Shown here in pieces: positions 27,844 through 53,625 of a stretch of 64,000 nt of DNA. How positions within the stretch are numbered: the stretch's first letter is position 1; each line of letters begins with the position of its first letter. The position numbers and the translations under genes are program-made. The stretch is taken from NCBI GenBank assembly GCA_020891255.1, contig BQFW01000013.1, forward strand, positions 2,480,001 to 2,544,000, written 5' to 3'. The DNA comes from Entomortierella parvispora E1425 (Eukaryota; Fungi; Mortierellomycota). The notes beneath the pieces are model-generated. The model ran no database searches. It was not told the DNA's origin and worked only from the letters and a program-made list of their open reading frames with translations.

Positions 27844-30800
27844 CTACTGAAGCTCCCTCGCCATTTTGGATGCTTCCTGGCTCAGGTTGAGGGAGGATGC
27901 TCGCTTTCTTGATCTGGAGGGGCCGTCAGACGGGCCGATACTACTCATTTCCGATGAGCTGTGGGTGTCCACCGCGTCTGTCACTTCTCCAGTAGCAGCT
28001 TGCCTCTTCGATGCGCGAGACTTGCTGCGGGAACTTGCACTTGTAGCTGCACTGGCTTCACTCTCGGTCGTAGAAGCACTGTGACTGACAGCCCCGGACG
28101 GTCCTTTGCCATGATTTTTGACGGTAGAAGACGCCCGTGCCTTCGTACTGCTGCCGGTCTTTGTCGCTTTGGACCTGCCTCCTCTTACGCTGGTGCTGGC
28201 CGTAATATGACTGTCCCCTGTGTTTTCATCTGATTCGGATATCCAGGGGTATCTGCCATCTTCTGTCACTGGCTGTAGGTGGAGGGGTCTTTCTTCCTTC
28301 TCAAGACGCTCCCGCACAATCATTGCCATATTCTCTGCCGCCATAATGTCCCGGTGGTGAAAATGCTTGCAATGCGTGCAATAGAGCTGCCGGATGGTTA
28401 CTCGAGCAATGAAGTTGTGACAATTGGGGCACTTTTGCGAAGTATAATACTCGTTGATGCCTACCACCAAGTAACCAAGGGAGCGTGCCTAATTGAAAAA
28501 AAACAAAGTAAGTTATCACTTGTCAAGACTGTGCTACTTGCTCCAGAGAAGGCTGGTCATGGTGAATTGTTTTTGACTTACCAGGGGGATGAAATAATCA
28601 AGAAATGACGAGTGCAGAGATGACAGTCGACTGGAGCTCTTGAATTGCCCCAAGCCGACTCCGATTATAACATGGTTGTCTGGGTCGCGATATCGTCCGG
28701 TAGTCCCTCCCACTATTCGTAGCAACCTCTCGGCGATTGCCTGATACTCGGCATGTTTGGCTCGTTTCATGTCCCAGGTATGCCTTTTAAACCGCCTATT
28801 TCGGCCATTATAAAAGGTGCTCAGGCGTTCTTCGACCTCCTCTATTTTTTTGACATACTCTTCCACGCTTGATTGTGAGCCTCGAAGAGGAGGGAGGTTC
28901 GATTCGATGTCCGATATAGATGACGGTTCAGCCTCCGTGACAACGCCTTTCTCTGTGTTTAGCCATCTTCGGTATCGAAATACAGGTTGCATTACCGCCT
29001 TTTGGTTAACAGCAAGATTGAGGTGAACGGGGCCGTCTTGCTCTGCATCTGTTGGTCTTGTCAGATCCACCGATATGTCCATTGTTGTAGAGAGAGCTCC
29101 GTTCCTGCCAGGTAGATATGCGTACGCCCCAACTACGAACGCTTGGCCGGCATCTAGAGTCAAGATTTTGATATCCGTTGGACGCGCACCGGGCCAAAGC
29201 TTCTCGAAATCCATGTCGTCCTTGACAACATTTCTGATCTCTTGCAAATAGGAGTCGGTTCCCCCAACTGTGGATGATATTCTCGGTGGAAGACGATCGG
29301 GGGGAAGCCGCCGGTATCGGACGCACTGAAGCTCTCGAAGCTTATAGGCAAGCAAGTATACTCTGAACCCATCTGTAAGGATGGAGCCCCTAGATACATA
29401 GCCCTTGACTGTATAGTCCTTTGGGTCGAATGTTGGATCATCTAGCATGCGAAGGTGCCTCCTGAGAGCTTTGAGTGACATGAGCTTGATTGCTGCACGA
29501 TGTCCTGCCTTGCCTTTCTTGCGACTTGTGAGATCTGAGGGGTCGATATCGGTAAGGTAACGTTTTAAGAGATAACCGGGCTCCTTGGTCCCGACCCATT
29601 CTTGCACATCCTGAATAGTCGGAGCCACCCCTTCATTAGATGCTAGCTCCGTCAACGATGTTTTGAGATCGCCTCCTCTTTTCATGAAAAATCCCGCCAG
29701 CTCTCGCTCAGTAAACCCAACAAATGGCTGCTCTACTGATGTCATGGGAGCGATTCTCCGGGGCTGTTGGATCAACTTGTTGAGCGAAACGTAGTTTTCA
29801 ACTGCGGAGACGTCATCTCGAATGAGTATCTGTGTGTTTGCATCCAAAATCCCGAGATCCTTAGCCTTCTTGAGCTAGAATAAATAGATCGGAAACGTGG
29901 TTATAGTTAGCATTATGGATATCAAGGTATTCTCAGATATTCTTCACATCTTACCTTATTGTGAATTATGCATGTCCCATGCTTATACATCTTTTCAAGC
30001 TCAGCCTTCAGCTGCGTGGCCATTGAGCGCAAAAGATCCGTGGGAGTAAAGGGCATGTTTGACTCGTTGATATCAACGGACGGCGAGACGTAGATTCCAA
30101 GTTCCGTGAGACGATCGATAAATGCATTGACCTTGTCCCCCATGGAAGAGGGTCTCGGTCGTTTTCCAGAGTACACTACTCGTAGAAAGCTCCAGATAAA
30201 TGGTGCCTGGACCTTGTCATCCTTCTTTTTTTTTGTTGTGCTGGTGCTTGGTGGTTGCAGGTCACTATCGTCGCTCTCTACTTCAGGTTCTCCATCGTCG
30301 GGATCAAGTTCAGCGTCCACAAGACCGTTGATCTGATTGTCGTCTTCCTCATCCGCAGCAATGTCGTCAGTATCCTTCACGTCCTCCATACTAACAGGTT
30401 GACAGAGGTGGCGCAGGATTTCCTTGTCTACAGAGCTGATGTGGTCGATTCCAATTTTGTCCAGTTTTTCGATATAGCAGCCAATCAGCCTCTGAGCTTC
30501 ACGCTTCACTCGAGCTGCCTCGCTTGTCGCTCCCTGAATGACCTCCATAACTTCCTGCTGCAGGTCCAGCTGGTTAGGAAGCGCAAGTCTGATATTTGCC
30601 TTCAGAGTACCAATGCTCAGTGAACTTGTTGGGTGGTGATAGGCCAAATGTCGAGTTATCGCCAGCTTGTCCGTTGCAGCCGTAGATTTTGACAAGGTCT
30701 TCAAAGTGGGTGGATCCTTTGGAGCGGATTTCTCCTTTTTGCGTTTAGTCTCAGGCTCCTTGTATGGTTTGTATGCAAGCTGCTTCATCATTGGGGGTCG

Positions 30801-32282
30801 TGGATGCTCCTGAGTCCCTTTCCTTGACTTGAACGAGTATCTTGGCTGATGGCGAGGGGTTCGTGTTCTTTGAAGTGCTGGGTGTAGTGCCTCTCCTGTC
30901 TGGTTACCGTGTGACGACGGGCGTCGTAAAGGCGAGGCAACATTAGAGCCGGGAGAGATGGACGAGTCTTGAGGCTGCTCAACCGGAGGCGGCATGGTGA
31001 TACGTGTGATACGTGCCCGTGTCAGGCGACTGTGCTGTATTGCAGGTGACTCTACCGTCTTGTAGCGGTTGCTGGTTGACGATGATCGCAACCGAATGAT
31101 ATCCATGGAGTTGCTATAGTTATCAAAACAGTATGATGAATACAAAAATTAGCTCATTTCCTTTCATATCTTGAATCCTGAGCTGTTAAATAGGCTTTAC
31201 CTGCTGTTGAAAGTCATTTGGAGACTTCTGTTTTGTTGATATCGTTTACAGAGGTCCATAAATCTTTGGCGAAGAGCGTTAAAGGAAGAGTAGGCAGAAC
31301 CTGATATCTGACAAGTGCTTGGCGTTTGCAACTGGTCCGCAAAGACTCGAAGAGCGAGTTCAAATGTCTTGTCGCAGGTGTTTTTGGATTGGACACCCTC
31401 GTGCTCCAGATATTCCGACACAATCGACCTAGGATCTAAAGACGACAGTTATTGTTTAACGTGTGAACGGGATGGCAAATCAAGACATTACAGTCGTCTC
31501 ATTTGTTTCATACCTTCGCCCTTGCTGTTCATGATGACAGAAAGGCTGGTGACTGGACCAAGCGAAAAGATGTTCCTGCCGTAGTCATTTGACACCACAC
31601 AAGCAAGAGCCGTGAGCTGAGCTGATGACAATCCAAGAGTCTGGCAAACATCTGCGCGACTGTAGGCCAGATGAAGTCCGCGAGAGATGGGTCGCCAGAG
31701 CGTGTAGATAGTGCCATATGCAAGCATATCACTATCAGCCGATATGACAATGTCTTCTGGCCGGCAGTCCACCGCGATGGCAACATCAGCCTCTGTCTCA
31801 CATATCCGAACAGTCCATCCAGCCTTGATCAGGTAATTGATGAAATCCTGGCGAACTGAGGATGGCCAATAGAAAAGTGATGCAAGGCTCTTCTTCACAT
31901 CGACGAAATGTCGCTTCCTAGCCTTTTGGTTGTTGGTGACTCGTTGCTCGAGTGCGTCAAGGTTCTTGTAGCATTTTTCCGCGGATTTGTCACTGTTGGC
32001 CTTTCGTTTTTTTGCTGTCTCTTCTTTCTCCACCGCTGCGCCACCATCAATGTAAAGAATGAGTCTATCCTTCCCGCCATAACGCAAAAAGTTTGCTTCA
32101 AGGACCTGGTGCGCTTCTTCGGGTGCCTTAAAAGAGTATGCGTTGCGGATGATAGAGTAAAACGACAGCACATCAAGACGTTTTGTACGATCGGTCATAG
32201 TTGACTTCACGTTGGAGGGATAAATCACAGAAGGTTCATAGCCTTTTTTGCGCAAAAAGGGGAACCAATCTTGTAATCCCAT
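27844..32282 (-). CDS. FEN1/XPG-family PIN nuclease fused to Fanzor (TnpB-like RuvC + Zn ribbon), copy 1, ~1366 aa
   Basis: Exons 32282-31514, 31435-31201, 31113-29955, 29874-28582, 28488-27844 (4101 nt, in frame, all GT-AG). PIN motifs: MGLQDW, RLDVLS, YIDG, EAD, SADSD, SNDY. Fanzor motifs: GSILTDG, ILTLDAG, IGVGLGQF, NEYYTSQKCPNC...CTHC...HRDIMAAENM. Confidence 0.9.
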
Positions 32283-32512
32283 TAGAGGCACGATTTGGAG
32301 GATGAGTAAAAGAGCAGATGATAAAAGGTGATGAAAAAGCGGAAAGCGATGTAGATGTGTAATGGTGCGAAGGGCTGACGCTGGTAATGGGGGGAGCGTG
32401 GTGGGCTACATAGGAAGATAGGAAGAAGGAGCGCGTATAGCGCGCTTGGATGGGCCAACTGTAGCCTCAATCCCAGCCAATGAGAGAATTAGGGCGTGGA
32501 TTGTCCTGGAGC

Positions 32513-32521
32513 CCAATTCTG
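32513..32521 (+). repeat. Left 9-bp target-site duplication CCAATTCTG of the MULE
   Basis: Identical to 40266-40274 and abuts the TIR. Confidence 0.88.
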
Positions 32522-32647
32522 GGAAGTGGCACAATTGAATCTATTTGACACGTCACCGAAGATGACGCATCGCACAGACCCCGCCACTTCCCAAACTCAG
32601 CCCGATGTATTTGCTGATACACAAAATGGACTGACTAAAATAAGTAT
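32522..32647 (-). ncRNA. Candidate Fanzor omegaRNA scaffold, copy 2
   Basis: 126 nt between stop codon and MULE terminus. An 11-bp perfect inverted repeat TGGGAAGTGGC/GCCACTTCCCA (32520-32530 / 32583-32593) encloses a CGTCA/TGACG hairpin. Expression not shown. Confidence 0.5.
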
Positions 32648-35600
32648 CTACTCCTCTGCTTCTCGCTTGACTTGATCGGGGTCATTCTCCATTTGTCGTT
32701 TGACTTGATCCTGTCCTCCCTCTGACCAATTGAGTGGCGCCTTTCGTTTGACTCCGCGAGCCGTGGATTTGACACTTAGTGTGGCTTCGGGGGAAGAAGG
32801 TACCCTCTGTGCGCTGAGCACCGTAGCACGTCTGCCCCCACGACCATCCTCCCACGGATATTTCCCTTCTGCATCCACAGGTTGAAGGTAACGAGGCCGT
32901 TGCTGTTTGGTAATATGCCCCTGAACAACATTCGCTATGTTGTGCCCACCCATCACATCTCTGTGAAAGTAGGTCTTACAGTAGGAACAGTACAGCCGTC
33001 GAATGTTCACTTGGCCGACGAAGTTTTCACAGCCCGGACACTTTTTGGAGGTGTAATACTCGTTAACACCAACCACTATGTATCCAAGCGACCGTGCCTA
33101 GAAAGCAATTGATGTTAAACTTGATATAATGATATGAAAAATAAAAAAAAATAAAAAAGGACCAGAGCACTATACCTTTTGGACAAAGTATGACTGAAAG
33201 GTCCCATGGAGGGAGGACAATCTCATTGTCGAGGAGAAGTCACCAAGACCAATACCAATGACAACCTTGTTTTCGGGATCTCTTTTTGATCCCAATGACC
33301 CTCCAACAAGACTCAAAAGTTGGTTTGCGATAAGCCTATATTCTTCCACCTTGGCTTTCTGGGCGTTCCATCTGTGTTTTTTCAGAACGACATTGTCATA
33401 AAACTGTTCGAGCGGGGCACCCTTTTCTTTCAAATGCTGGACGTAATCCTTGATAGATGCCTCTGGACCACGAACAGGTGGTAGACTCGATTCCAAGTCG
33501 GCAACCGACAGTGTTCCTCCCAAAGTTTTTTTTTTTCCTATGCTCTAGCCAGCTTCTGTGTCTAAAGACAGGTTGGTATACGGCCTTTTGCTTTACGGAC
33601 AGGTTGAAAAAACGCTGCTTCGCAGGAATGGCAGTTGCTCCACCTTGTGAAGGTAAGATAGCACTAGCCCCAACCACGAAGGCCTGTCCTAAGTCGATTC
33701 CCAATATTTTGATCTTCTCAGGATCGACGCCATCGCCCCAGAGTCGGTGGACATCTTCCTTGGATTTGACGACATTCCTGATCTCCGTCAGATAGTAATC
33801 CAACCCACCCAAAGTAGAGGCAATGCGGTCAGGTAGCTTCTCTGGAGCAAGACGGCGGTACTTCACACAATTCAGCTCGTTGAGTTTGAACCCAAGTACT
33901 TGAAGACGGAATCCATCTGTCCTAATCGACCCTCGTAGGAGATATCCGTTGGCGGCATAGGTCTTGGGATCGAAGGTCGCTTGAGATATGTTGCTCAGAT
34001 GAGTCATAACTTCTGGAAGTGACATGGTCCTTGCTGACCTTGAGAAGCTCCTCTTCTTTTTTCTCTCTTCCGCGCTGTATCCCCCGATGTCGGACAAGAG
34101 GCTGTTGATGAGTAGGCCAGGCTTGGAATATCCTAGCCACATCGCAACAACATCTTGGGTGATTTTCTCGAATCGATGGACGTTAACCGTATGGAAGGCG
34201 AATTTCTGCAACTGTTCTTTCAAGGCCTGGTCCTGCCAGAAGAGCTTTATCAAGTCAAGCTCTGAGATGTTAACAAACGTGCTGTCCATAGGTGATATCG
34301 GGGTAACACATCGTTTGGACCCTGTGATTCGGTTTAGGATGATGAAGTTCTCCACTGGAGATAGCTTCAAATCGATATTGTCCACCGTGTTCGGAGGCAG
34401 TATACCCTTCTTCTTAAGAGCACGAATCTGAATAGGAGCACGCGAGGAGGTCATTAATACTTGAGAGAAAGAAATATTAACCCGAAATCGGCAGCAGGCG
34501 CAGACTATTATTGTTACCTTTTTGCAAAGATCAAGAGAGCCATGTTTGTAGTGCTTCATATACTCAATAGTAAGATTCAGCGCAGTTGATTGAAGAACAG
34601 AAGAAGAAGGATATGGCCCTGCCGCTATCGATATGAGGACGAGGAGACCAAACGATAACATGTTAGATAGAGAATAGAGACGCTCAGGCACATGCAGACA
34701 AACCATTTAGTCATAGTAAGCACTTGATGACATCAAATTTACCATTGCCATTCTGCGGAGGCAAGAAGTCCTTTGCTTTGATCAGGAATTCGCGAACCGC
34801 ACACACTGAATCCGAGTCCCCCTTTTCTTTCTTCACCTTTGCCTTGTCAGCGTTCGATGCGGTGTTTTTTTGCTCAACCGAGGGTATTTGGTCGCTGGAA
34901 GACGTTTGGTCGGTGTAAGACAATTGATCGGTGGAAGACGATTGATCGGTCGAATGAGGCTTGTATTTGGCCTTAAATGCAGCCAATCTTGCTGTCTGTG
35001 ACATTTTCGGAGGTTCCGAGTTGTAAATGCTCGACAGAAGTGACAAGAAAAAACTGGAGAGACTTGTTCTTCTTAAACATCTCGTCATCTGCCTCGACGC
35101 TGGTCGTATTGAGCTCATTGCGTTCTCCTGGATCCTCGTTGTCTTCCAAAGCAGATCCCTCAGCAGGAAGCTTGTCTCCGGCAACGAAGGGCTTGCACAA
35201 CATGCCAAGGATAAGCTTGTCATTCTTGTCAAGATTATCCATAGACAGGGTCTCCAAGTATTGCCCTATTGCTAGCTGGCATGCCCTCTTCGTCGCTGTC
35301 GCCAATCGTGCAACATTTGACAAGCAGGTCTTAATTCGAGGCAAATGTGACGCAGGAAGCAACGTCCTTTGTAGAGCTCGAGTGACATTCGCGTTTAGAG
35401 TGCCTACATCCATGACTCGAAGGGGATGTTGCCGCTGGAGCTCCTTGACAAGCCGCATCTTATCCATTGTCCGGAAATTAGGCGGATCTTTTGTCACACT
35501 CTCGCTTGATTTCGTTGTGGTGGGAAGCACAGGTCGAGGGGGAGGTTCTGTCCACGGCTTTAAAGTGTACTGCTTCAGAACATCTGGGGGGTCGTGCTCA

Positions 35601-36990
35601 ATGATGCGGGACCTCGTTTTGATGGCGTACCGCTGGCGATATTTGTATTTCCTGCCAGACGCGTGAGGAGATGGCGAAATTGCAGGTTGACTGTCGACAG
35701 TGTTGTACCGATTAAACTTATACTCAATATCGCCAGTATGGGCGACGGGCAGGTTGGAAGAGGACCTAGAAGACGATAATGATACCTTGTTAGTGACTGG
35801 AGAACACAGTCTTGCTTTCAAGTGCTGAAGTGCTGAGTGAAATGAAGAAAGTCCATACCCTTCACTCCTAACAGTCTTGAGTTGGCTCTGCAAACTTCTC
35901 AGCCTCGCAGTTATTTCTGTCAGAGACGGGGAAGAACGCGGCTGATTCATCGTATCCTCATAACAGGCTTGGGGCAGCAGAGTTTGATCCCAAAAGGTAA
36001 ATTCTTGTCGGGCAAATACCTTCAGGGCCGAGTCGAAATATGAATTGCCAGGATCCTTAATGATCACCTCCGGATGGGTCAAATAGGCACGAATCAATTC
36101 GTTGACATCTAATGGGGGGTCTTCACAAAATAGGGCTGTTAGTTGGTACTAAGGCATCCATCATGGCAATGCATTGGTGGGAGGGACCAAAAGTACATAG
36201 AACAGATGTTACCTTTGTCACGCAATGATTGGAGGACCTCATAGTTGGTGACTATGCCCATTTGCTTCAAATTGCAGGAGTAGTCGTTCCGACAAACAAC
36301 ACCAAGAGCTGTGAGACCCGCCCTGGTTAGCTGCAAATGTATTAACAGCTTCGGGACGTCGTACTCAAGGTATCCTCCCCTGGCAAGTGGCCTCCAAATT
36401 GTAGTGATCGAAGAAAGATGGACGAGACTATCACTGTCACCAGAGACAACAATATCCTCAGTGCGGCAATTGAGTGCAATCTGGATGTCAGCCTCTGATG
36501 GACATTGAATGACACTCCAGCCCTTTGCTATTAAGAATTGAGCAAGCGACTCGCCAAGGTCGGCAGAGAGATAAAATGCTGCGTTAAGCCCTTTGTTGAG
36601 TTTCCTGAATTGCTGTTTCTTGAGCTTCTTTTTCTGCCGAAACATATCCTCCATCTCATGCAACAGCGAGTCCGCTTTCGTCAGGGATGTTGAGCAACGA
36701 GCCTCACGCAAGGCTCTTGTTGCGCGTTTCTCCTCTGGGGATGGTCCGTCCATATAGAGAAGAGTCGTTGCTGGAGGAAATTTAAGAGACCGGAGCTTCA
36801 TCTCGAAGATAGAATTGGCCATCACTGGGTCGTGTTTGAGGAATGTGCGGCGAATGAGAGGGTACATTGAGCCCAAAATATCGACATGAAAGGTTGTATT
36901 CGGGGGCCGAGAATGCTGGGGGCAGTTGGAAAGAACGTCGGGGAAGTATCCCTTCTTCTTGACGAACGGCCATAAGAAAGGGACGCCCAT
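32648..36990 (-). CDS. PIN-Fanzor fusion, copy 2, ~1314 aa after correcting two +1 homopolymer frameshifts
   Basis: Exons 36990-36213, 36108-34743, 34618-34518, 34427-33176, 33097-32648; the second intron (34619-34742) is the least certain. PIN motifs: MGVPFLW, HVDILG, YMDG, EAD, SGDSD, RNDY. Fanzor motifs: GSIRTDG, ILGIDLG, IGIGLGDF, NEYYTSKKCPGC...CSYC...HRDVMGGHNI. Extra bases in runs at 35048-35053 and 33526-33536. Confidence 0.85.
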
Positions 36991-37344
36991 AGCAAAAGGC
37001 CCGGCGGAAGATAAAGGGCAACCAGGGATTGAGCGAGGAAGTAAAGGTGTATAAAAAAATATGTGGGTGGTTGGGAGGGTGGGTGGAAGAGGGGAGGTCA
37101 GAAGGAGCGACAGAGCAGAAGGAAGTTGGGAAGAAAGGCGTGTCTTTTAAGAATCCTGGTGAAGGAAGGATGGGAGTGGGAATTTTTTGCCACCACTTTT
37201 GTTCCCAGTTCAAATTCAAGCCACTTGGTTGCACAAAATAGTTTGTGTTCCTGTTTTCATTTTTTTCCCGCCTTCCCGCCGCCGCGCTTCCCGCCACCGC
37301 GCTTCCCGCGTTTGTCCTCTTGCCTCCTGCTCCATGCATGCCCC

Positions 37345-40094
37345 ATGGCCAGCCTTCGAGTGAAGGACATCCTCCTGCAGCCCGAGGACTTTGATCCCCG
37401 CGAGATATACACGCCCAACAACATTTCTCAGGAGCACGAGATCTGGAGGGCATCACTCTCCATCGAGGAATTCAAAACGTTTTGGCATCGAGAGCGGACA
37501 GCAATTCAATTGAACATCGTGTTGAAGGAGGATGCAATCACCATCTCTTGAAAGGTGACCCAAACGCCTTACTTCCAACCTACCGCCCTGCACCTCCCTT
37601 TGGTAGCGCTCCAGGGGGACAAAAGAGGTTCGATTGGAGTTTCCGCTTCACATGCAGAAGGTACAGGCAGATCAATGATAATTTGACCATCAAACGCGCA
37701 TCCGTTGGACAGAGATGTCCTGTTTCTATCCGGATGAAAAAGCCTGTAGGGAGAGAGCTTGTGGTTGTAGAGTATCAATGGAGACACAATCATGACGACT
37801 CCGCGGAAGCACGAGCCAGAATTCCATTGAGCTGAAACGAATTGATGTGGACCAAGTCCCAGGCAAAGAACAACCAGAGGTGGACTTCAATTAAAGATCT
37901 TCTCCGTCCAGTTAACCAGGCAGCGATGTCCTTGGTAAGCAAGGTCCCAGACTTTGAACGTTAATCAGTGAAGAGGTATTTCCAACTGATGTACTCATAT
38001 TTCCGTTGCTGTGATTTAGCTCGCGAGCACGACACCAGGAAGCCCGTTGAGCCCTGCTGCATACATGAAATACAAGCATGTAAAATCTGCCATCTACCGC
38101 TCAAAGACGTCTTTGTCCCGTAAAAGTAACCCCACCCTGAGTATCAAACTTTGGATGAATGATATTCAAGCACATGGTGGCAAGAGTACGTTCGTCCCGA
38201 AAGTATCAGGGATCGACAATAATTACTTCTTTGCCTGGTCTACCAAATTTCAGCTGGAGGTAGGCATTGCTTTTTGATGTCTGTGTTTCCCATACCATAC
38301 TCCCACTTACAAACACTATCCATGTTACTTCGTTGACCAGATTATGGCTAGGAACACGGGGATCGTGTGCATGGACTCTACTCACAAGACAGTTAAATCA
38401 CTGTTACCTGATCCTAAGGATAAAAAAACGTGCCCTTCCGCGTACCTTTTCACCCTCCTTGTCCGAGATCGTCAGGCAAACTGTGGAGTGCCCGTGGCTT
38501 TTATGGTCTGCAATTCAGAATCCATGTAAGTTTCAGAGTATACCACAACTGATCCATTGCATTCTGAGGATGCAACAATGAACTAAATGGCCTTTTTTTT
38601 TTTTTTTTTAGAAATACTCTGAGACTCTGGCTAAAATGGGTTTCCGATCACTGTGGTATCAATGCAACCAAATTCATGGTGGATTGCTCCCAGGCGGAGT
38701 CAGAAGCGATATATCAGGCCTTCATGACCTCGGTAGATATTTACTATTGTACATTCCATGTTGCTCAAGCGTGGGAGAGGAAATCCAAGGAACTGTACGG
38801 AGTAAGTGTGTAAGAAAAGTGCGTTGCCGCCCGGGTAACAGATTTTGTGATGAAGCAATTAATTCTCATGTTGCAACAGGTCAAAGTCTGTAATGATTTA
38901 CGTGGGCCACTGAAACGGATCCGAACCGCCGAAACTGAGGAGGAGCTTGCTAGAAGATGGGACAGCTTCACAGAAACATACAAAAAATACGACAAGATGA
39001 TCAGTTACTTGAGAGCATGGATGACACCTGAGAAAAAAGTGAAGTGGGTGCTGTACATAAGAAAAGTAAAGTAGGCCATGGTTTGCAGAAGGACTGAAAG
39101 TCGAGTCAAGTTTGTATGACCTTTACTCTCTAACCATTTCAGCACTTCTTTCAAATTAAACTAGGACTATCAACATACAAATACTAACAACCTTGTGGAG
39201 TCCTGGCACAAGACATTGAAGAGACGGCATTTGCAAAAGAGGCGTAATTTACGTGCCGATGACTTGGTGTTTATATTGCAAGGAAAAGTGGATATCGATT
39301 TTCAGGACACTTTGTTCAAAATCTCCCGAAATCTTGTTGAGAGACCACTGTCGACGTATGACAAAGAAAGAAAGAGTAAAGCGATGGGTCTGGAGCATAC
39401 CACTGCGATTCAGATGGTTAGATTACAGCTCCCTGCCATCAAGGTACCTCCACTTGCTGTTGCAAGTTTTTCTTTTGCTCCGCTCATCACGGTCACTTGC
39501 TTAACAGCTTCATATTATCACCCTACACTTCCTTAGTTTGATGTTCAATCCTTTCGATCTGCAGCTACATGGTATTCAATCCGTGTAGATAGAGACTTCA
39601 ATCTCATCCTTGCATGCACATGCTCTGATTACCGCCAACATCTGTTGCCATGTAAGCACATGTACCTTGTGGAAAGATTTCACGAAAGCATGAAGATATC
39701 ATACACAGGAGAGCCAGCTGACGACCCCGAGGATGTGCTTGTTGATGAGCTTGCTATTGGGGAATCCCTGGAGCAAGCCAACCAAGACCTAGACATCTTT
39801 GGTCCCGATCTGGAAGCAGGGATTGGTCCCTTGCTCCGGCTTCAACTTGACCAACAGCGGGCCAAGGAGCAAGAAGCTCGTAGGGCTGCCAGAGAACAGG
39901 CCGTCCTTGCTGAATTTGAACACAATGAGGCGGAACTGAAAGATATGGCGAATCAAATTGTTGCGACTGTGGAGGCGAGAAAGGGGCGAAAATGTACCTT
40001 GGAGTATCTCAAAAGTACTGTGGCGGCTTTAAGAAACACTGTGTTGGAGATCAAGGGTCTTAACTCAGGGAACACCGGGCGGACTTGTCAGTAG
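37345..40094 (+). pseudogene. Mutator-family DDE transposase with SWIM zinc finger, disrupted
   Basis: N-terminal C..C..HNH DNA-binding motif (FTC...RCPV...WRHNHD), VCMDSTHK, FMVDCSQAE, CTFHVAQAW (CxxH), TNNLVESWHKTLK, SWIM CTCSDY....PCKH. Introns present. Frameshifts near 37.5 kb and 38.7 kb, and an in-frame TGA at 37833-37835. Confidence 0.9.
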
Positions 40095-40265
40095 TGGATG
40101 GATCAAATAAAGGGACTTAAAGTCAACGGCGCGTCGATTGACCAGTTGTCGATTGACCATTGTCCATTGTCCATTGTTCGATTGACGATGGCGGGCCTTG
40201 TCGGACTTCGAAGGGGTCAAGCAAGAAGTCACGTTCCGAGCCATAGAAGCAATTGTGCCATTTCC

Positions 40266-40274
40266 CCAATTCTG
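40266..40274 (+). repeat. Right 9-bp target-site duplication CCAATTCTG of the MULE
   Basis: Identical to 32513-32521. Confidence 0.88.
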
Positions 40275-40462
40275 CGGTGACGTAATTCTAGCGCTAAATG
40301 CGCTGCAAATCCCTGATTTCTCGATTGCTTTCGTACATCTTCACACAAGGAGACATAACTTCCTCCGCTCTTCCACCTACACCTCTTATCAAGATCAACA
40401 CGTCGATATTAGAAAAGGTAACCACTTTATAGCGGTAAAGAAATGTGCTGCCCCTGTTTATA

Positions 40463-42930: not shown

Positions 42931-42966
42931 TTGGTTTTGACGTCCATTGGTTTTGACGTCCATTGG
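42931..42966. promoter_or_regulatory. Twice-repeated 16-mer containing CRE-like TGACGTC and CCAAT boxes
   Basis: TTGGTTTTGACGTCCA x2 followed by TTGG. Regulatory role is inferred only. Confidence 0.3.
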
Positions 42967-43529
42967 CAATGGCCCTCATCATGTTGCACACGCCCACATA
43001 TTTAGGTCGTTATTTTAATTTTGTGGAGTTCATTATGCATGGGGTTGTCCTGGGTCTGCCAGACTCAGGCCTCACACTAGGCTTGCTGCTCCTTCAGTAA
43101 CGTAACTGCTTGTGATAGACTCCAGCTCCTATTTGACAAATGCCTCATTATACTGCACCGTCCCCCGTCTGCATCATTGCGAAAAACCGCGTCGTCCTTT
43201 CCGTCGTGGTGGAATAGTTTATACAAAGATGGATAGGTGTGTGAACATGCGAACCGCATCGATTCTTGAGTTGGAACTACAAATACGAGTACTGTGGAAT
43301 CGTATTCCCACACCTTGCCCACCGCCAACAAGCACACTCGAAATTCCTTCTCACATAGAGCCTGTTTTCACGCTGTACCAGACACAGACATTTATCCCTT
43401 AGTCTGTAAAATATGGCAAATTTGCCCGTTAAAATTTATTTTATCTGGGTTTTAATATTATTCTAGAAAAATCACTAAGCCACCCCTGCTGTGCACCCCC
43501 TGCTTGTGCCTGTTGTTGAGATACGAGCT

Positions 43530-46500
43530 GCATATGACCCCCTTCTCTGTGCAGTAGACAAACTGCAAGCAGGATATACAATGACACCACAACCAACGGA
43601 ATCAGAACCGGACTTGTCGCCTCCAATGGTATCAGGGCTCGCATTCGTGGATGACACGCACTGGATCTCAGACAACAAAGACAACATGCAGAGGATCCTA
43701 GACAGATCCATGTCATTTTTCTCACTGCACGACATCCAAGTCAACGCGACAAAGACAGTCGTGATGGCGCTCAACAACACAGAAGTAGAAACACCAACAT
43801 TACAGTTCGGACAGCCACCTGAGAGTATCAAACCAATTCACAAAAGCGTCGCAATAAGGATCCTGGGAGCCTGGGTCGCCGCAGACGGCAACAGTAAAAA
43901 GACGAAAGAACTTGTCATGGAGGAAATCAACACCGTCGATGCCATCCTGAATAGGAAAGCTGTCACCGACCGCCAGGCCTTGTATATCGTGAACAACGTA
44001 CTTCTCCCGAGGATGAGCTACCGCCTATCACTTACAGTATTGTCGCCATCGGAAGCAAAACGACTTACAGGAAAATATACGGAGGCCGTAAGGAAAAAGG
44101 CAGGCCTTGCGAAGGGCACGCCGTACGCTCTCCTCCATCACCGCCGGTTCTATGGAGTACGACGACTGGTGGACACACAGGCAGAGGAGCACATTGGCCC
44201 ACTACACTCGCGTCTTAACGATCGAGGCCTAATTGGTCAACTCACCAGATCAAGGTCGCGAGCGCTACAAAGACAATTAGGCATCGCGCAACACCCAGTG
44301 GAGAGACCAGATATAGGAGCGACAGGAGACAAACACAATATTATAGGACGAATATGTGGACTCATGAACCAGAGACACCTAAGCTTCTACCCCACTACGC
44401 AAACGAACAACAGGCGACAGCCAATAACAACTCTATTCACAGTACAGGAGTTCGCTAAGGCTCGAAAGCAACTGAAAAAAGCAGGCCTCCTCTATCTGGA
44501 CCAGGTGTTAACGGATGACAGGAACGCCATCCTCACATGGGCAGAAGTCAGACAGCAGCATTCAATTCGAACTCGAACACCTCAAACATGGTATGAGCAC
44601 ATCACCGCCAAACTGACAACAGCAGGCCTCATAGCGACCCACAACATTAATATAGACTTGGAAAGAGAAAGACTGCAGATGCAGCACAGAGCAAAAGATC
44701 CCACAAAAAACACAGCCAACGGGACAGATTTGGCACGAACAAGAGAGGACATGATAAGAAGATTGGAAAAAGAAAACACAGCGGAATCACTTTGGTACGT
44801 AGACTATCTTCACGAAGCCGATGAATCCGAACCCACTTGGGATTCGGAGGAGGATGTTTATTCCTTTGGGGAGGTTTTTTCTTCTATATCTCAACGCAAT
44901 GTAGTGGGCCTTGACGGACAGCTGTCTCCTGAGCAACGCTCGGTCGACGACGCTTCCCAACCGAACTGCAGCAATTTAGACTCGCGACTGCTCTCAACAG
45001 AGTGTCTGGGACAAACACAACAGGCCAAGGATGGCAACGTTGCAACCGACCCTCAGTCGCCAGGTGAGTATGAAGGTGACAGTGACAGTGACAGTGACCA
45101 CACAACAAGATCGCAAAAAGAACAAAAAAAGAGAGAAAAGGGCAAAGAAAAAAAGAACAACGGTCCAAAAGAAACAAAAAAAGAAAAAAAAGAGCCCAGC
45201 GACAATATCAGATGCTCACCATAAATGAGCAAGGGGGTGCCTCGAGCACAACAAACCCCTACACCACTTTTTTCTACTCTTCTTCTTCTTCCTCCACTTC
45301 TTCATCCTGCTCCACTCCTTCTCCTTCCCCCCCTTCTTCATCACCCTTACTTTCACCGCACGAACACTTTCCCCCCTTACCTTTCACACACGACCAGCAT
45401 TCTTCCTCAACACCCCCATCCTTAATAGATAGCCGTTCCAGTTCCCCCATTTCATTCTCGTTTTCGTCAGATCAAGACCCTGAGTCGGCACAGGACCAGG
45501 ACTCCGAGCCAGAGCCAGACGGAGCACAGTCACCACAGCAGCCTGAACGAGCACCAGCCCCTAACCGAGACCATGCTTCCTATCTGTTCGGAGCTACAAC
45601 CCCAGGAGAACGCAGAAAGGCTACTACGGCCTTCCTCCGACAACAGAGAGCACCAGAACGCGCCCTTGTCCAAGCAACCATCCCCACAGCAGGCAGTGAA
45701 AGAGTGGCAATAGGATCCTTACTGGTAGACCAAGCAACAGCCAACGCGATCACTGAGGCTCAGATCCGCCCACCCGCACCCGCACCAAGACATATATACT
45801 CGGATGGATCACTCATCCGAGCAGGCACTGTGTATAGCAGTATGGCGTTTGGAGTTGCCACAGTTGCCCCAGACACGCCCCTTCGAATAAGTGGACGTCT
45901 TCAAGGCTTCTCATCCTCAACAGCGGCGGAACTCATGGGGCTACATGCAGTCATAGTCGCGGCACCAGCAGCAGAACATATTATTCTCCACTTGGACAAC
46001 CTCTCCGTCGTCAACAACTTCAACAAATTGGTCAAACACAGAGATAGGGCAACTACCAGAGAGAAGATGAGATGCAACCATGCAATCCAATGGGCTGTCA
46101 TTGCCCAGGCATGCAACATACGACAGGGCGCGGTTGAGGTCTGCTGGGTAAAGGGACATAGTGGCGACCCAGGAAACGAGGAGGCAGATAGGACTGCTGT
46201 TAATGCGCAAACATCAGACTCAATGCCGTGGACAATCAATCAGTCACACCAACAGGACTTTCAGTTTGGGGCACAATTCTTACAGACAAATATTGACACA
46301 GACGTCCGCCGCCTAGTTCGCCATCAATCGTGCATCAGGGATCATTGTTCATGGATGGCACTGAAGCAAACCAAAAAAATGAACCTGGACAGCAGCGACA
46401 TACACTGGCAGTCGACCCTCGACATTGTACACAACAATAACAACACAGGATCCTTTTATACCTCACAAAGAGATTCGTCGCTACGCAGTCATCGCGTCAA

Positions 46501-47519
46501 GAAGCTGTGCGGAGTGCTCCCAACCCAAGATCTCCAACACACCCGTCGCCCAGACATCTACCTCAACGCTCTTTGCCCTTGTTGCGAGGACCAGGACGAG
46601 AGCAATGAACACTTGTGGAACTGCGATGCACACATTGCAGCAGAACGAAAGGTCTGGACCAAGACAATAGAGGCCATTGCAGAATGGGCACATCTGGAAG
46701 AGGCACGCTTACGGAGAACATGGGCAAAAGAGCGAGATCGTCACATACAGAACCATCTACCTTTCACTAAGGCAGCCCCCAAAATATCAGTACCAAGCGA
46801 CCGCGCCGTCTGGACCACATTACAACACAGAAGGGGAACAGTGGAGCGTGCTCCATGGGATGTCCGGAAAGCAGCTCAGACGGTGGCGGAGAGGGCACTC
46901 CAGCAATGGAAGGTGGCTGACCTGTACAGCGGGATCTCACCTCATAGCCTTACCCAAGTGTGGAGCAAGCTCTTTAAGACCAACATCACCACGGCCCAAA
47001 ACCTCGTCCACCGTTTCTGCCGCGCTCTCGAGGAAGGGATTCGAGAGGCAGTCTGGCTGGACCGTTGCAATAGACAGATTGCAATGGAAAAAGAACAAGC
47101 AATCACCAAGAAGATGAAGAGAACACTGCCACCGAGACAACAAGGACCGCAAGTCAACCCATGGCGATCCTGGGTCGGAGCACCACCCGCGGAGGATGAG
47201 TGCGAATGCGGACAATTACTAGACAACCACACGAACAACACTTGCCCCGGTTTTACGGGCGAAGCCATCGAAGCGGATATAATTCTGCTGGACACATATC
47301 TAGGTCGGCGACGACCAGCAGTGATGGAAAGGATGGGAAGTTGTAAATTTTTATTGTCGTGAGGCGACCTAGACCTCGGGTTCTTCTCTTTTTAAAAAGA
47401 GGAGAGCGACGCAACGGTCGCGTACGGCTCTGGATGCAGAAGCATGCGATTGAAAAAAAAAAACAGTGGCTTATGTCACATTTCTATAGGCCCCTTGTCA
47501 ATAAAAAAAAAAAAAAAAA
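43530..47519 (+). mobile_element. 5'-truncated non-LTR retrotransposon (RT C-terminal part - RNase H - Zn knuckle)
   Basis: 18-bp TSD GTTGTTGAGATACGAGCT at 43512-43529 and 47520-47537; AATAAA plus A17 tail at 47500-47519. RT motifs YDPLLC and AFVDDTHW. RNase H motifs IYSDGS, AAELMG, LDNLS, WVKGHSGDPGNEEADR. Knuckle CPCC....ESNEHLWNC. One frameshift in the A-rich linker near 45.12-45.21 kb. Confidence 0.95.
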
Positions 47520-47537
47520 GTTGTTGAGATACGAGCT

Positions 47538-48708
47538 CAGACTGACGAAACCTTTCAAGAATAAGACGAGGAGCAAGAGGCGCCTGATGAACTAGAGCAA
47601 GATGAACAAGAGGGAGATCAGGTGCAGGAGGGAGATCAAGAGGAAGAGCCTCTACAGCGAAGGAGAGGGAGAAAGAAGACGAAGCCCAACATCAAATTGC
47701 CTGATCCTCCAGAGTTCGAGCCTCTGGTCCAGAACATCCGGCGTGGATATGTCAGTCTGGATCCTGTTTTCCAGGGCATCGTACCACCACCCATCACTCT
47801 CTTTCGATTTTTCTTCACAGACCTCATGCTCGATACAATCGTTAGGAACACCAATCTTTACGCCGAAAACAAAAGAGCTGAAGCGGGTGCAACTGGTCGT
47901 GCTTGGAAATCAATGACCAGAAACGAACTTGTTACCTGGATCACCATCACCATTTACATTGGACTTCACAAAATGTCGTCGTTAGTACAACTCTGGAACA
48001 CAGAGCGAGTGGCACCGACACACTACATATCAAGGTACATGAATAAAGTTCGATATGAGCAGATCAAGCGTTATTTCCATGTGTGCGCCCCAGATGCCGT
48101 TATTGATGAGTACTGTGATAAAGTCGAGCCACTACTGTCACATACCCGAGATACCTCAAAGCGACTCTACACGCCAGCATCGAATGTCTCCATCGATGAG
48201 ATGATGATCCGGTTTTCGGGACGAACTGCTCACACCGTTCGTATGAAAAACAACCCGATTACGGAAGGCTTCAAGATATTCTCTCTCTGCGATGCTGGAT
48301 ACACCTACACTTTCATTCCATCATCTAGGGTTCAGTCAGTCCGAGTTGAAAAAATACCCGGCCTCACTCAAACAGGGAACATTGTCAACCATCTTGTCCA
48401 ACAGCTACCGAAGAGTCCACATTACCGCGTTTTTATGGACAACTACTTCACCAGTGTCAAACTTTTCCAACACTTTCGAAACCTCAGCATCGGCGCCTGC
48501 GAAACAAGAAGGCAGGGTGGAGTCCCCAAGGAGTTATATGTCGACAAGAATGCAAAGCTCGATTGGGATACTAGGTCTGGTGTTGTTGTCGGCGACGTAC
48601 TGGTGGTCTTTTGGATGGATAACGGTCTGTTCTCTCTGCAAAGTTCCTCTTTGCACAAAGAACGATCGAAACTGTTTTGAGGAGTGCCATACGCGTCTCG
48701 AGTTTTAG
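47538..48708 (+). pseudogene. piggyBac transposase, inactivated
   Basis: LFRFFFTD, IYIGLH, RYEQIKRYFH, VSIDEMMIRFSGR, FMDNYFTS. After WMDNG (~48625) the sequence jumps to the C-terminal Cys-rich domain (CSLCKVPLC....NCFEECH) in another frame, so the third catalytic Asp region is deleted. An N-terminal in-frame TAA is also present. Confidence 0.9.
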
Positions 48709-49180: not shown

Positions 49181-52100
49181 ATGGGAATCCAGGGCCTTGC
49201 AGCTAGGATCAAATCGACCGATGGAGTTGAGGAGGACCTTCGAGGATTCACCTGTCATGTGGACTGCGCCTCCATGTTTTTCGGAATAATTCACAGTCAT
49301 GGTTTCCACCTGGATGTGGCGTTCGCAGCCAAAAATGCTCGGCGACAGGTAGCTTCGCCCGATGTCCCAACGAGCGCGTCTACACCACCGTCAACAACCA
49401 TTCCGAAGCGACCAGGAACAGATGAGGCCAGTCTGCATCGAAAACGCGCCCGGGTAGATCCTTCAAGCCAAAGCACCCCTTATGGCATTGTAGCAGCGAT
49501 GCAGGATATGCTGGCAGAACGACCATCCCAAATTCGTTTCGATCAAGACGGGTCACTGGAAGCACACGATGCTGAGGAAAGGAGCGTTGTACGTATATCT
49601 GTATATCTACTCTACATTTAAAGAGAGTCTGATCATTACAACAAGAGTCATGCCTTTTCGATTAGAATACTTACCGTCTCAATCGCGCTGCTTCTTAGGA
49701 TTATCGATCCTTGGGGAAGACAATCGATCGAATCCTTGTGTCCTACTTGAGCAAGGATCATACAACACTTCATTTCGACGGTTCCCGGTCCCTGGAGAAG
49801 GAACTTGCTCACAGAAAGCGCGACCAAACCTTGGAGACGCGAGTCGGCAAGCTAGAGAAAGACTATGACGGGGGCAGGATCAGGAATACTACCCAACTAT
49901 ACAAGAGGGTGAAGGCTTCGTACCGAGTTCCCGCGAGCGCAATCAGGGATATCATCACACAACTTCATGAAAGCGGATGGAAAATATGCCAGTGTACCCA
50001 CCAGAGTGACACATGCATTGCAAACCGCGTGACGAATGCCCGTTCAACAGATAATGTCAGGATCATTACCAAAGATTCAGACTTTATGGCATACGAGTCG
50101 GTGACTACAGTCACAATGCCCGTTGGTCGGCCCTTGACTTGGACCACTTTCAGTAAGCAGGCACTTTTGGACGAACTCGAGCTCCAAACTCCGGCGCATC
50201 TCGTACTCGTTTCTGTCTTGACGACCAATGACTATACCGCAGGCATGCCACTCTACCAACTGGCATCGAACATGGCCAAGGTTAGACAGCTTGTGACGGG
50301 GAGCTCTAACGTTGCCAGCAAAGATGACCAGGCAAAATGGATTTACCAGCAAATCGAAGAGTATGTCCATGCCATACATCAGACTGCGGAGGAGTCAAAG
50401 GCTGCAGCCATCGCGAGTTGCGAGAAACGTCTGAGGAGGATCGCCGACCCTTCCTCAGTAAAGGCCCACCAGAAGGATCTTCGACGAATAGCCACTGCCA
50501 ACAAGCAGCTGAGCGTGTTAGCCAACAGCTATGACAATGCAGTGAAGGCATTTGTTCATTGTGAGGAGACAGCTCTAAATGCAGATGGAAACAGTCCAAC
50601 GCTGGACATTCACCGGCGACTTTTGTCTATAGTTAACAAAGTGGAACTCAAGAAAGCGAAGCGCAGTTGGGACCGTTTTGCCCTAGGCCCTGCAAAACCA
50701 CCACATACGGAGCCGCCATTGGCACCACCAGCACCAATAGCCGAATCGGACCACATAGCACCCTCCACAGATGCGGCAGACTCTTCGACCTCCGTCCAGC
50801 CTGTCCCTGACCCGAGCCGTGCACAGAAAAGGGAGCAGAAGCGACAAAGGAAGAAGGCCAAGAGGAAGCAGGAAAGAAGAAAGAAGAAGTGGGAGAAATC
50901 AAGGTTCGTATCCTTTTGGGAACTAAAAGACAAAGTTGCATCAACTCCAACGTTCTCACATATCGTTCATGTACCTCTTTAGATTTCGATCCCGGACCGA
51001 CCTGAACGATCGATATCTTCCCCAAACAGTTGCGCTGGAGACTGCAAGTCCCATAGACGATGTTAAGCTTGCACACTTGACGCCTTCGACGCCCAAAAAA
51101 CCAAAACCGCGTAAACCAACTACAAAGTCCGATCGGCCACTAATTTCCCCAGTGAAAAAGACACGCAAGAAGGAGCTTCCTATTCCCACATCACCGACAG
51201 CGGGTCCCAAGGCTCTTAAAAAATCCTTCAAATCTGCTTTTGCAACCGTTACTCTGACCATGGGTTCTCTGCGAGGATGTCTCCTGCGTGCCACAGATCT
51301 CTCCAAAGAAGAGAGCACGCTGGTAGTCCAGCGTCTGGATGAAGCTGTCTCCGTCACCAACAGTGCCAAGCATTACGTATTGAAGATGATGGAGATGAGG
51401 ATTTTGCGGCACTTGATCGACAGCACTGGGGACGAGTTTCTGGAAAATGTCCTGGACTCAAAGTCAGACTGGCTAGAAAGATTCGTGCAGAATCTTTTAT
51501 CGTTTGTCTTGCGAGGCTCCTCTGACACGAAAGGTGGACGCCGTACTGTTAAGGACCAATCCAAGGATGCCGTGGTGGAAGCACAAAGTACCTTTGACGA
51601 ATTCAAGGCGTTCCACCCGGAGTTCGAGGCATTAAACCCGTCCAACCTCCCCCTGAGCAATGTCATTGCTGAACTGACACCAAAAATCTGTCTAGCAATC
51701 AAGCAGCATTATCGCAAATTGCCGACCACTCTCTGCAACAAGGTACTGAACGAAGTGGTTTTTGAAATTGGATCACTGCATTCTAAAAAAATTGATTCTA
51801 ATCGAAGAATACCTTTGCGTGCTGCAGTTGACAAAGTTATCTTTAGACTGCACCGAGCTTATGGGGGTAGTGGATGACGAGAAGACATCAGATGCTGCCA
51901 TCAACGACGCCATCAACGAAGCCGAACTGTCTGCAGATGACGAAGACTCAGACGACGACCCAAGGAAAGCATCGCAAAAGATGACGTTTAAGAAGGGTCA
52001 CTTGAGACTTTGCTGGCGTTATTTGCTGCAGATACCGACAGCCGTAAAACAGCCAAAGTTTTGTGTCCAGGCAGGGATGACAGACTCTTTCATTGACCTG

Positions 52101-53625
52101 AATGAAGAGGCTCTGGTGGCATTACTATGGGGCGTATCAGCCGGAGGAGTGGGCGACATCTTGATGACCACCGTCTGCAATCGGCAACGTGCCACTCACC
52201 TCCGGAAAAACTCCTACGGAAATGTCATTAAACAGTTGTTTGTCGGAGACCGGTCCAGTATCAAGGCAGCCAAGAAAAGACAGACACCGTACGGGAAGAA
52301 AATAACCTCAATGGACGAGCGGAGCAACACCTTGCCGGACGTGTACGGCCAACTGGTGCTAGAGCAATACAACAAGAGGCGTATTAATCACTACCGGAGA
52401 CTGCACAACAACTCCCTCACAGCCCAGCAACCATTGTCCTCCTCCTCGGCACCATCGACAATGGATCCTGAACCACCTCGACTTCCCATGCCGCCCCAGG
52501 TTTCCGGACAAAACCGATATGCCCTGAACAACATAATCCGAACAGATGGGCATGAGCTACAAATCCTTGGGTATGATCTTTTCAAGCCACGGAAATCGAC
52601 AAGATACAAAGAGTTCATGAGGAGGATCGAGACTTTGTATCCCGACAAGGACAGTTTGGTTGCTGAATTCGGTCAAGATCTTGAATCAGTTGTTGTTATC
52701 GGAATAGATCCAGGAGAGGTGGTCAGTGGCGCCTTTTGTGTGACCTTGCCGGGAGAAAGGGTTGTCAACCTGACAGTGAAAAGGTCATCGCTTTATCAGC
52801 CGACGCTTGCATTCCGAGAATGGGCGGAGCATTGCAAACGGGCCCAACCAACAGCAGGATCAAACGACAGCATAGGCCCTTCCTTGTGGGCTTGTACTCA
52901 GCAGGGTCAGGACCAAGACAACCCAACTTTGTTGCCGTCGCTGCACGACCTGCAAAACGCCCTACATCCGCTCAACTACCACGACATTACAGCCATTGAA
53001 AACAGACACCGGCAGTACTTCCAACTTGAACCTTTGATACACGGGTTTTATTCATCAGCAACCTGGAAGAAAGCGGCTCACGACCACAAAAAATCCAAAC
53101 TTGCAGAAATGGACCTTGCGGTCAACGGTGTTTTTAAGTTGGTGGAATTGGCATGCGAAGGAGTTCCTGTTGAAGCAAGGAGGGTTATATTTGTGCTCGG
53201 GAATGGCAAATTTAAAACAGGCATCAACCTGACGTCCGTGCACACCACTTTCCTGAGGCGTCTTTTCGGAAAGGTAAAAACACACACGATCTTGGTAGTG
53301 TCCGCGCTCTCTCTCTTGTGGGCATGCAGATTGATTATATCTTTTCCCTCGCTTATGATAGATACAAACAATGGGATACAAGGCCGTCATTGGCGATGAA
53401 TACCTCTCATCGACAGTGTGTCCCACGTGCATAGGAAAGAACGTCGCGACACGCCTTGCAAAACCCTCTATGAGGACGTGTGCGTGCACGCAGTGTGGTC
53501 GATGGATCCACAGAGACTGCGTGGGAGCGCACAACATTGCGATAATCGGAGAGCGGTATGTCCAGCAGCAAGACCGACCGCGCCAGCTCGCGCGACCCCC
53601 ACCTTCTTCCCTCCAACCTCTATAA
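49181..53625 (+). CDS. PIN-Fanzor fusion, copy 3, ~1360 aa
   Basis: Exons 49181-49588, 49699-50903, 50983-51742, 51828-53273, 53362-53625 (4083 nt, in frame, all GT-AG). PIN motifs: MGIQGL, HVDCAS, HFDG, QSD, TKDSD, TNDY. Fanzor motifs: NIIRTDG, VIGIDPG, VLGNGKF, DEYLSSTVCPTC...CTQC...HRDCVGAHNI. Confidence 0.9.

Follow-up and report, generated by a model that had tools for sequence, protein, structure and literature searches.

Predicted Rad2/XPG nuclease-Fanzor fusion genes in the fungus Entomortierella parvispora

A 64,000-nucleotide (nt) stretch of the Entomortierella parvispora E1425 genome (contig BQFW01000013.1, forward strand, positions 2,480,001 to 2,544,000; here called the window) contains three divergent copies of a gene that very probably encodes a genuine fusion protein, in which a flap-nuclease domain of the Rad2/XPG family precedes a Fanzor-type nuclease. 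The N-terminal domain spans ~310 amino acids (aa) and the C-terminal Fanzor part ~700 aa. Chance resemblance is ruled out by matches in Pfam, in profile searches of the Protein Data Bank (PDB) and in fold comparisons. The architecture is present in public sequence databases, yet it appears to be undescribed in the literature searched. We consider it likely that the fusion travels on a transposon, and it may couple a guided cut to processing of the 5' end by a tethered nuclease. All positions given below are those of the window.

Structure of the three gene copies

A first-pass annotation of this DNA, made from the sequence alone, had proposed three copies of a gene joining a FEN1/XPG-type nuclease to a Fanzor, and all three were found where it had placed them. 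The genes and their parts are as follows.

27844-32282, minus strand: copy 1, XPG/FEN-Fanzor fusion gene; five exons, intact, 4,101 nt, 1,366 aa
32282-31514, 31435-31201, 31113-29955, 29874-28582 and 28488-27844, minus strand: exons of copy 1
31514-32282, minus strand: copy 1 exon 1, Rad2/XPG-type nuclease domain beginning MGLQDW
29955-31435, minus strand: copy 1 exons 2-3, end of the XPG domain, disordered linker and start of the Fanzor module, from the translation
28582-29874, minus strand: copy 1 exon 4, WED/REC region and RuvC-I Asp (TLDAGQAFVVGA)
27844-28488, minus strand: copy 1 exon 5, relocated Glu (INEYYTS), CxxC..CxxC zinc ribbon, RuvC-III HRD and disordered tail
32648-36990, minus strand: copy 2, fusion gene; tblastn match with the copy 1 protein at 36990-32651
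49181-53625, plus strand: copy 3, the most divergent fusion gene; tblastn match at 49181-53622, four GT-AG introns
49181-49588/49600, 49699-50888, 50983-51742/51754, 51828-53273 and 53362-53625, plus strand: exons of copy 3

The four introns of copy 1 measure 78, 87, 80 and 93 nt and each runs from GT to AG. The spliced frame has no internal stop, and its length is the same 4101 nt that had been given in the first-pass annotation. Exon 1 carries the first Asp and the DG, EAD, DSD and NDY motifs, and the linker is rich in Ser, Pro and Arg, with a KRKKEK stretch at aa 458. When the copy 1 protein is compared with the window by tblastn, copy 2 is 34-45% identical and copy 3 is 22-32% identical. 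Copy 3 is open for all four combinations of donor sites, with frames of 4,068-4,092 nt; the open frame reported earlier is thus upheld, and the reported 4083 nt lies within this range. The three paralogs retain one layout at 22-45% identity.

Relatives in other genera

A search of 1.84 billion representatives with exon 4 returned 632 cluster representatives at E<=1e-3, and all 12 hits of at least 960 aa align to both the XPG region and the Fanzor region of copy 1. One of the relatives, P0030 from Actinomortierella (1,310 aa), is colinear with copy 1 over residues 1-1311. In several cases, XPG_I and TNB Pfam matches occur within one deposited protein. The deposited relatives, which come from NCBI annotation of Mortierella, Actinomortierella, Linnemannia, Dissophora and Entomortierella, are named "Rad2 nuclease", "putative transposase", "Cas12f1-like TNB domain-containing protein" or "hypothetical protein". 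Copy 1 shares two intron positions with the Actinomortierella locus, one following the XPG domain and one preceding ARSLGY; the latter intron is also found in copies 2 and 3. A word-indexed protein search yielded only 2 and 4 proteins, a sample too small for a taxonomic census. The fusion is therefore not an artefact of the splicing chosen in the first-pass annotation, since NCBI models from other genera are colinear with it and share its intron positions. From these comparisons we infer a single transcript across both halves.

At least one deposited model, that of P0030, splices out the catalytic Glu segment. In Actinomortierella ambigua (L001 7582-7715, the gene of KAF9977791.1), a wrong acceptor in the model drops ARSLGYIILGVNEFYTSQK, the catalytic Glu segment, which is encoded in the DNA directly after a GTAAGT...TGTAG intron.

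No description of this fusion was found in the literature searched (Fanzor with XPG or Mortierella; TnpB with XPG), and an XPG-type domain is unmentioned in the Fanzor papers PMC10432273, PMC10530073 and PMC10711439 and in the TnpB/Cas12 classification paper. A supplementary table of the Nature paper lists at least one Mortierella Fanzor, of another type. The earlier suggestion that the fusion is undescribed agrees with this, though the sequences themselves are public under misleading names.

The N-terminal flap-nuclease domain

Taken alone, exon 1 of copy 1 remains below the Pfam threshold (XPG_I, E 3e-4; Pox_G5, E 1.6e-4), and its phmmer match to yeast Rad2 has an E of 9e-5. With a profile built on the N-termini of 13 family members, the match to Rad2 reaches E 2e-12 over positions 1-248, and there are further matches to archaeal FEN1 (4e-11), human XPG (1e-10), human FEN1 (~2e-9) and EXO1 (3e-9). 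The relatives P0023 and P0012 have XPG Pfam scores above threshold. In the AlphaFold model of another relative, P0042, residues 2-312 have a predicted local distance difference test score (pLDDT) >90, and the fold of this region is closest to EXO1 (Z 22.4 over 278 aa) and FEN1 (Z 21.6), with XPG at Z 17-21. Profile and fold thus bear out the FEN1/XPG-type N-terminus that had been read in the first pass.

In the family alignment, the MG..G start, the first Asp and the DG, E-A-D, D-S-D and N-D-Y motifs are kept in nearly all relatives, and a Lys and an Arg (EK..T...R) are conserved after the DG motif. Within the window, the first Asp, DG, DSD and NDY occur in all three copies, as claimed at first; EAD occurs in copies 1 and 2 only, which corrects the first reading for copy 3. 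By FEN1 numbering, the seven metal-binding acids are D34, D86, E158, E160, D179, D181 and D233, and this set is complete in copies 1 and 2. The N-to-I spacing is short, like that of FEN1 and EXO1, and the P0042 model has long helices at 90-122 and 129-141, candidates for the helical gateway or arch of the FEN1/EXO1 subtype. These results support a FEN1/EXO1-like nuclease of the Rad2/XPG family with putative flap endonuclease or 5' exonuclease activity.

The resemblance to FEN1 and EXO1 thus extends to the MG..G start, the acids, the Lys/Arg pair, the helix-two-turn-helix with NDY, the compact N-I spacing and a fold likeness of Z 21-22 over 270-278 aa. In contrast to those enzymes, the fusion domain has no C-terminal partner-binding tails, runs directly into the Fanzor part and is transposon-encoded. 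Its identity to any solved Rad2/XPG member is 15-20%, which indicates an old branch of its own within the family; recent capture of a FEN1 or EXO1 repair gene from the host is ruled out by the same figure. GEN1 is the weakest family match to the N-terminal profile (E 0.009) and has a fold Z of 16.8, against 22.4 for EXO1. A GEN1-like junction resolvase was accordingly ranked lowest on similarity and is the least favoured option. No chromodomain of the type typical of GEN1/Yen1 was found in the Pfam search of the window exons.

The C-terminal Fanzor module

The Pfam family Cas12f1-like_TNB (PF07282) matches the last exon of copy 1 at E 1.3e-11 (44.9 bits; cutoff, 26.3 bits) and that of copy 2 at E 2.5e-9, also above threshold. 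Profile searches with the C-terminus match the TnpB-like protein L79 of mimivirus (a Fanzor), LaTranC, CasPhi and TnpBs, and these matches run through the segment from NEY through the zinc ribbon to HRD, with the NEY shared by mimivirus L79. A phmmer search of PDB sequences with copy 1 exon 4 gave nothing meaningful, so the RuvC assignment needed profile and fold comparisons.

For the fold, an AlphaFold model of residues 430-1140 of P0042 was used (pLDDT 84.5; predicted template modelling score, pTM, 0.82). This C-terminal fold matches the Fanzor of Parasitella (PpFz) with Z 13.8 over 441 aa and that of Spizellomyces (SpuFz) with Z 13.4 over 414 aa at 3.7 Å. Residues 18-633 of SpuFz, essentially the whole enzyme, are covered by residues 21-695 of the model. 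Among the best 50 fold matches, all 50 are Fanzor, Cas12, TnpB or RuvC proteins, and ISFba1 TnpB and Cas12f are matched with Z 10-12. When the full-length P0042 model was searched with Foldseek, EXO1 and FEN1 were returned together with SpuFz (E 3e-8), PpFz and GtFz. Two proteins of AlphaFold DB were also matched: one of 1,083 aa aligns along the entire model, and one of 855 aa aligns to residues 81-1153. The hit over residues 81-1153, A0A507C583, may extend the family to chytrids. Between the two domains, at residues 348-427, the equivalent of the linker, the P0042 model has pLDDT <50.

All three copies keep the RuvC-I Asp (LDAG, IDLG and IDPG), the Glu of NEY or DEY, two CxxC pairs and HRD; in copy 3, the motifs read IDPG, DEY, CPTC, CTQC and HRD. 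The three acids of the RuvC triad are therefore seen in every copy, in agreement with the first reading. The canonical RuvC-II strand has no acid (IGVGLG), which fits the relocated-Glu arrangement that has been described for Fanzors (PMC10530073). Among aligned relatives, the RuvC-I Asp is conserved in 61 of 62, the Glu in 18 of 24 and the RuvC-III Asp in 25 of 29. The expectation that the C-terminus would model as RuvC/TnpB is borne out by the fold scores to both fungal Fanzors and by the above-threshold TNB matches. Together these data support, through the model, a complete Fanzor1-type TnpB-like module with WED, REC, RuvC and zinc-ribbon TNB parts. By analogy with its relatives, this half is probably RNA-guided.

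Like Fanzor1 enzymes (SpuFz1 of Spizellomyces punctatus, PDB 8GKH; PpFz of Parasitella parasitica, PDB 9CF1), which are eukaryotic, intron-containing and transposon-borne, the fusion has the WED-REC-RuvC-TNB fold, a Glu relocated to NEY/DEY before the zinc ribbon and a stretch of predicted RNA-like structure reaching the transposon end. Its linker also resembles the disordered, basic N-terminal region with a nuclear localization signal (NLS) that has been described for Fanzors (PMC10530073). It differs from Fanzor1 in being about twice as long, in its extra N-terminal Rad2/XPG domain and in its identity of 11-14% to solved Fanzors. Bacterial TnpBs (IS200/IS605, IS607) are alike in having a RuvC-TNB core and also have a 3'-end guide RNA that extends to the element end, for which the fusion has a candidate, whereas the fusion has a eukaryotic host, introns, a context of terminal inverted repeats (TIRs), a larger REC and the additional nuclease domain.

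Giant viruses and poxviruses have compact FEN1-like nucleases (Pox_G5; ESM Atlas XPG clusters of ~230-300 aa) that are similar to the N-terminal half in their minimal size. The ESM Atlas XPG clusters nearest to it have language-model features of 0.92-0.94 and a template modelling (TM) score of 0.76 by hit. These viral nucleases, unlike the fused domain, stand alone; their relation to it is a lead that comes from approximate searches. The ESM Atlas clusters nearest to the two P0042 halves are compact XPG proteins of ~300 aa and DUF8286+TNB 'transposase' proteins of 620-670 aa; they are labelled mostly as Nucleocytoviricota, which is a lead on origin only. No ESM Atlas cluster holding both domains was returned for the P0042 halves.

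A stretch of predicted RNA structure between stop codon and element end

Downstream of copies 1 and 2, the DNA between the stop codon and the end of the element is predicted to fold.

27715-27843, minus strand: candidate omega-RNA scaffold of copy 1, 129 nt from stop codon to element end, fold z -5.35
32521-32647, minus strand: structured stretch of copy 2, 127 nt from stop codon to element end, fold z -6.22

The 3' region of the Actinomortierella homolog has the same layout, with a fold z of -4.19 relative to shuffled sequences. A consensus drawn from three sequences only contains 35 pairs, of which 11 are compensatory. No Rfam family matched the candidate region. These stretches are candidates for an omega-RNA scaffold that ends at the transposon end, as judged from sequence and predicted folding.

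Transposon context

Copy 2 lies in an element with TIRs.

32521-40266: TIR element with copy 2, 7.7 kb; TIRs at 32521-32544 and 40243-40266, CAATTCT duplicated at the two flanks

In the inverted repeat search, these TIRs are 24 nt long and 88% complementary. Within this one element, copy 2 stands head-to-head with transposase pieces on the plus strand (37400-40100). The pieces match the Pfam SWIM family below threshold (E 0.002), and ESM Atlas gives weak SWIM/MULE leads; on these grounds the transposase is probably Mutator-like and SWIM-containing.

Copy 1 is alone on a 4.8-kb element with terminal repeats of ~30 nt, the right one of which is interrupted by the copy 2 element. When 32493-32520 is joined to 40267-40277, the result is the mirror image of 27715-27745 (GGCGTGRATTGTCC...CAATTCTGCGG), which places the copy 2 element inside the right terminal repeat of the copy 1 element. 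It follows from this nesting that the DNA just outside the copy 2 element end, which would be the source of a Fanzor guide, is the terminal repeat of its sibling. No TIR was found around copy 3 in the repeat search.

Outside the right end of the copy 1 element, the sequence at 40267-40285 is TGACGTAAT. In a contig from an independent DNA run (X1) that has a loose end at 32514, another copy continues past its end with TGACGTCATAAT. These outside sequences may reflect a motif that is preferred for insertion or as a target. Several contigs of 3-13 kb in runs X12 and X8 match only ~40 nt of the terminal repeat of the copy 1 element (32474-32513, 27723-27758) and then continue with unrelated sequence. 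This suggests that in related strains members of this terminal repeat family occur at many sites or in other elements.

Is the fusion one functional gene?

Several observations weigh against the reading of these loci as genes for one functional fusion protein. As assembled, copy 2 is closed by a frame shift in an A11 run (33526-33536), and the single frame described earlier for copy 2 does not hold for the assembly. Its linker (~35100-34620) requires an atypical intron or a second correction, which leaves two possible splice patterns: either a weak-donor intron of 320-416 nt is used, or a second 1-nt change in the T6 run at 35048-35053 is combined with a 118-nt intron. With the A-run as in X1, the full frame of copy 2 is 3,756-4,068 nt depending on the linker chosen, and the 'corrected' 3945 nt of the first-pass annotation was not reproduced exactly. 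In copy 3, the seven-acid set fails at the E158-equivalent, where QSD replaces EAD and a Q takes the position, so that one metal-binding Glu of the flap-nuclease site is lost. Both folds were modelled on P0042, a relative that is 39-43% identical, and not on the window proteins. A whole-gene search listed no RNA runs containing copy 1; the run search with copy 1 exon 4 returned mostly DNA runs, and the few of unknown kind contain almost nothing of that exon. Four aligned runs showed no splice joints, and at this locus run X9 provided only short, high-depth pieces of 90-95% identity that were not interpretable. Lastly, between the window and run X1, the copy 1 differences listed comprise 14 synonymous and 18 non-synonymous ones, the non-synonymous excess lying mostly in the disordered tail. 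These counts are weak evidence of mild constraint, because 19 further differences fall outside the counted list.

The case for the fusion rests on comparative evidence, which is strong. The halves could instead be adjacent XPG-like and Fanzor genes that are joined only by gene models and made as separate proteins. Such an arrangement fits the outcome of the run searches, the likeness of both halves to the stand-alone ESM Atlas proteins of ~300 aa and 620-670 aa and the disordered linker between them. We nevertheless find it very improbable. The ~1.4 kb linker of copy 1 is open in frame with both halves, free of stops and interrupted by phase-compatible canonical introns; copy 3 and no fewer than twelve deposited models, drawn from five genera, have an open linker as well. 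In the X1 contig, 42 nt (14 codons, in frame) are skipped at 30912-30955 in the disordered linker of copy 1, an indel in another strain that keeps the frame, and the Fanzor module follows the linker so closely that a promoter would not fit between them. Alternatively, the window copies could be decaying relics of an old transposon family, with remnant motifs and an inactive protein. The frameshift of copy 2 in the assembly and the active-site Glu lost from copy 3 fit this explanation, as does the probably Mutator-like element inside the terminal repeat of the copy 1 element, in a region littered with transposon remains, among them a retroelement and a piggyBac-type gene. However, copies 1 and 3 are open over >4 kb at 22-32% identity, which would be unexpected without selection, and catalytic residues are conserved family-wide. 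The frameshift of copy 2 is also absent from the independent DNA run, where a 6.6-kb X1 contig shows 1 mismatch and one A fewer at 33526. The A-run length in X1 restores the reading HRKKKTLGGTLSVADLESSLPP, which agrees with relatives, so that the break is either a mistake of the assembly or a polymorphism between strains. Decay of the window copies thus seems improbable, and a maintained fusion gene remains the favoured account.

How the two nucleases might act together

In the favoured account, each copy would be a single intron-containing gene on a TIR DNA transposon, and its product would consist of a flap nuclease of ~310 aa, a disordered, basic, NLS-like linker of ~100-140 aa and a complete Fanzor1-type nuclease. 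The RuvC nuclease of Fanzors and TnpBs is guided by RNA from the 3' end of the element to DNA that matches the flank (PMC10432273, PMC10530073). By the same route, the Fanzor half would be loaded with RNA from the structured ~130 nt between the stop codon and the transposon end and would cut DNA matching the flank. The flap/5'-exonuclease half could then trim the displaced or 5'-overhanging strand at the same site, or start 5'-to-3' resection; instead of simple rejoining of the break, repair would then draw on a copy in which the element is still present.

The FEN1-family active site requires a free N-terminus, and the position of the domain at the extreme N-terminus of the fusion fits this need. 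Assigning the XPG half a role in resection or flap processing is nonetheless tentative and rests on analogy with its relatives. Equally speculative is the possibility of a 'cut-and-chew' homing enzyme, in which an RNA-guided cut would be followed by tethered resection that blocks end-joining and forces homology-directed copying of the transposon. The XPG domain could instead serve RNA or the R-loop and not repair, either by excising the guide RNA from the mRNA or a transcript of the 3' untranslated region, or by nicking the displaced non-target strand. In the second variant, the nick would fall at the junction of single- and double-stranded DNA, and two active sites would share the double-strand break. 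A candidate guide scaffold that lies within the 3' end of the gene needs release from a longer RNA, and sequence profiles put Rad2/XPG, the bubble-cutting members, first; the N-terminal placement, which leaves free the N-terminus that the active site of FEN1-type enzymes requires, would suit such a role as well. On the other hand, the predicted fold is nearest to EXO1 and FEN1, with compact helices at 90-141 in an arrangement for threading free 5' ends, and the RuvC of TnpB and Fanzor makes double-strand breaks unaided (PMC10432273, PMC10530073). We therefore regard an RNA or R-loop function as unlikely and keep end processing at the guided cut as the favoured, though tentative, account.

A single polypeptide that combines an RNA-guided nuclease with a 5'-3' exonuclease or flap nuclease has a parallel in the editing literature, in engineered fusions of Cas9 or Cas12a to 5' exonucleases. 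Those proteins are man-made, whereas the fusion genes described here would be natural and evolutionarily maintained. Fanzors and TnpBs have been described as single-nuclease RNA-guided enzymes, and it is an open question how the cuts of eukaryotic Fanzors give transposon retention while end-joining competes with recombination. A conserved flap nuclease-Fanzor family suggests that evolution has coupled cutting with end processing in one protein. If true, this would be a built-in answer to the choice of repair pathway, which genome engineers have sought through artificial fusions. The compact natural parts (a FEN-like domain of ~300 aa, a linker and a Fanzor1 core) would be of interest for genome editing, and current annotation scatters the fusion genes among "Rad2 nuclease", "transposase" and "hypothetical protein".

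Neighbouring sequences

Directly after copy 3, on the plus strand, lies an open reading frame (ORF) of 643 aa (53763-55694) for which Pfam gave no match at E 0.01. A retroelement on the plus strand (43491-47362), situated between copies 2 and 3, consists of two long ORFs with an RNase H domain (E 4.8e-13) and the remnant of a reverse transcriptase. It is followed by a piggyBac-type transposase ORF, also on the plus strand (47622-48680; DDE_Tnp_1_7, E 1.5e-45), which ends 500 nt upstream of copy 3.

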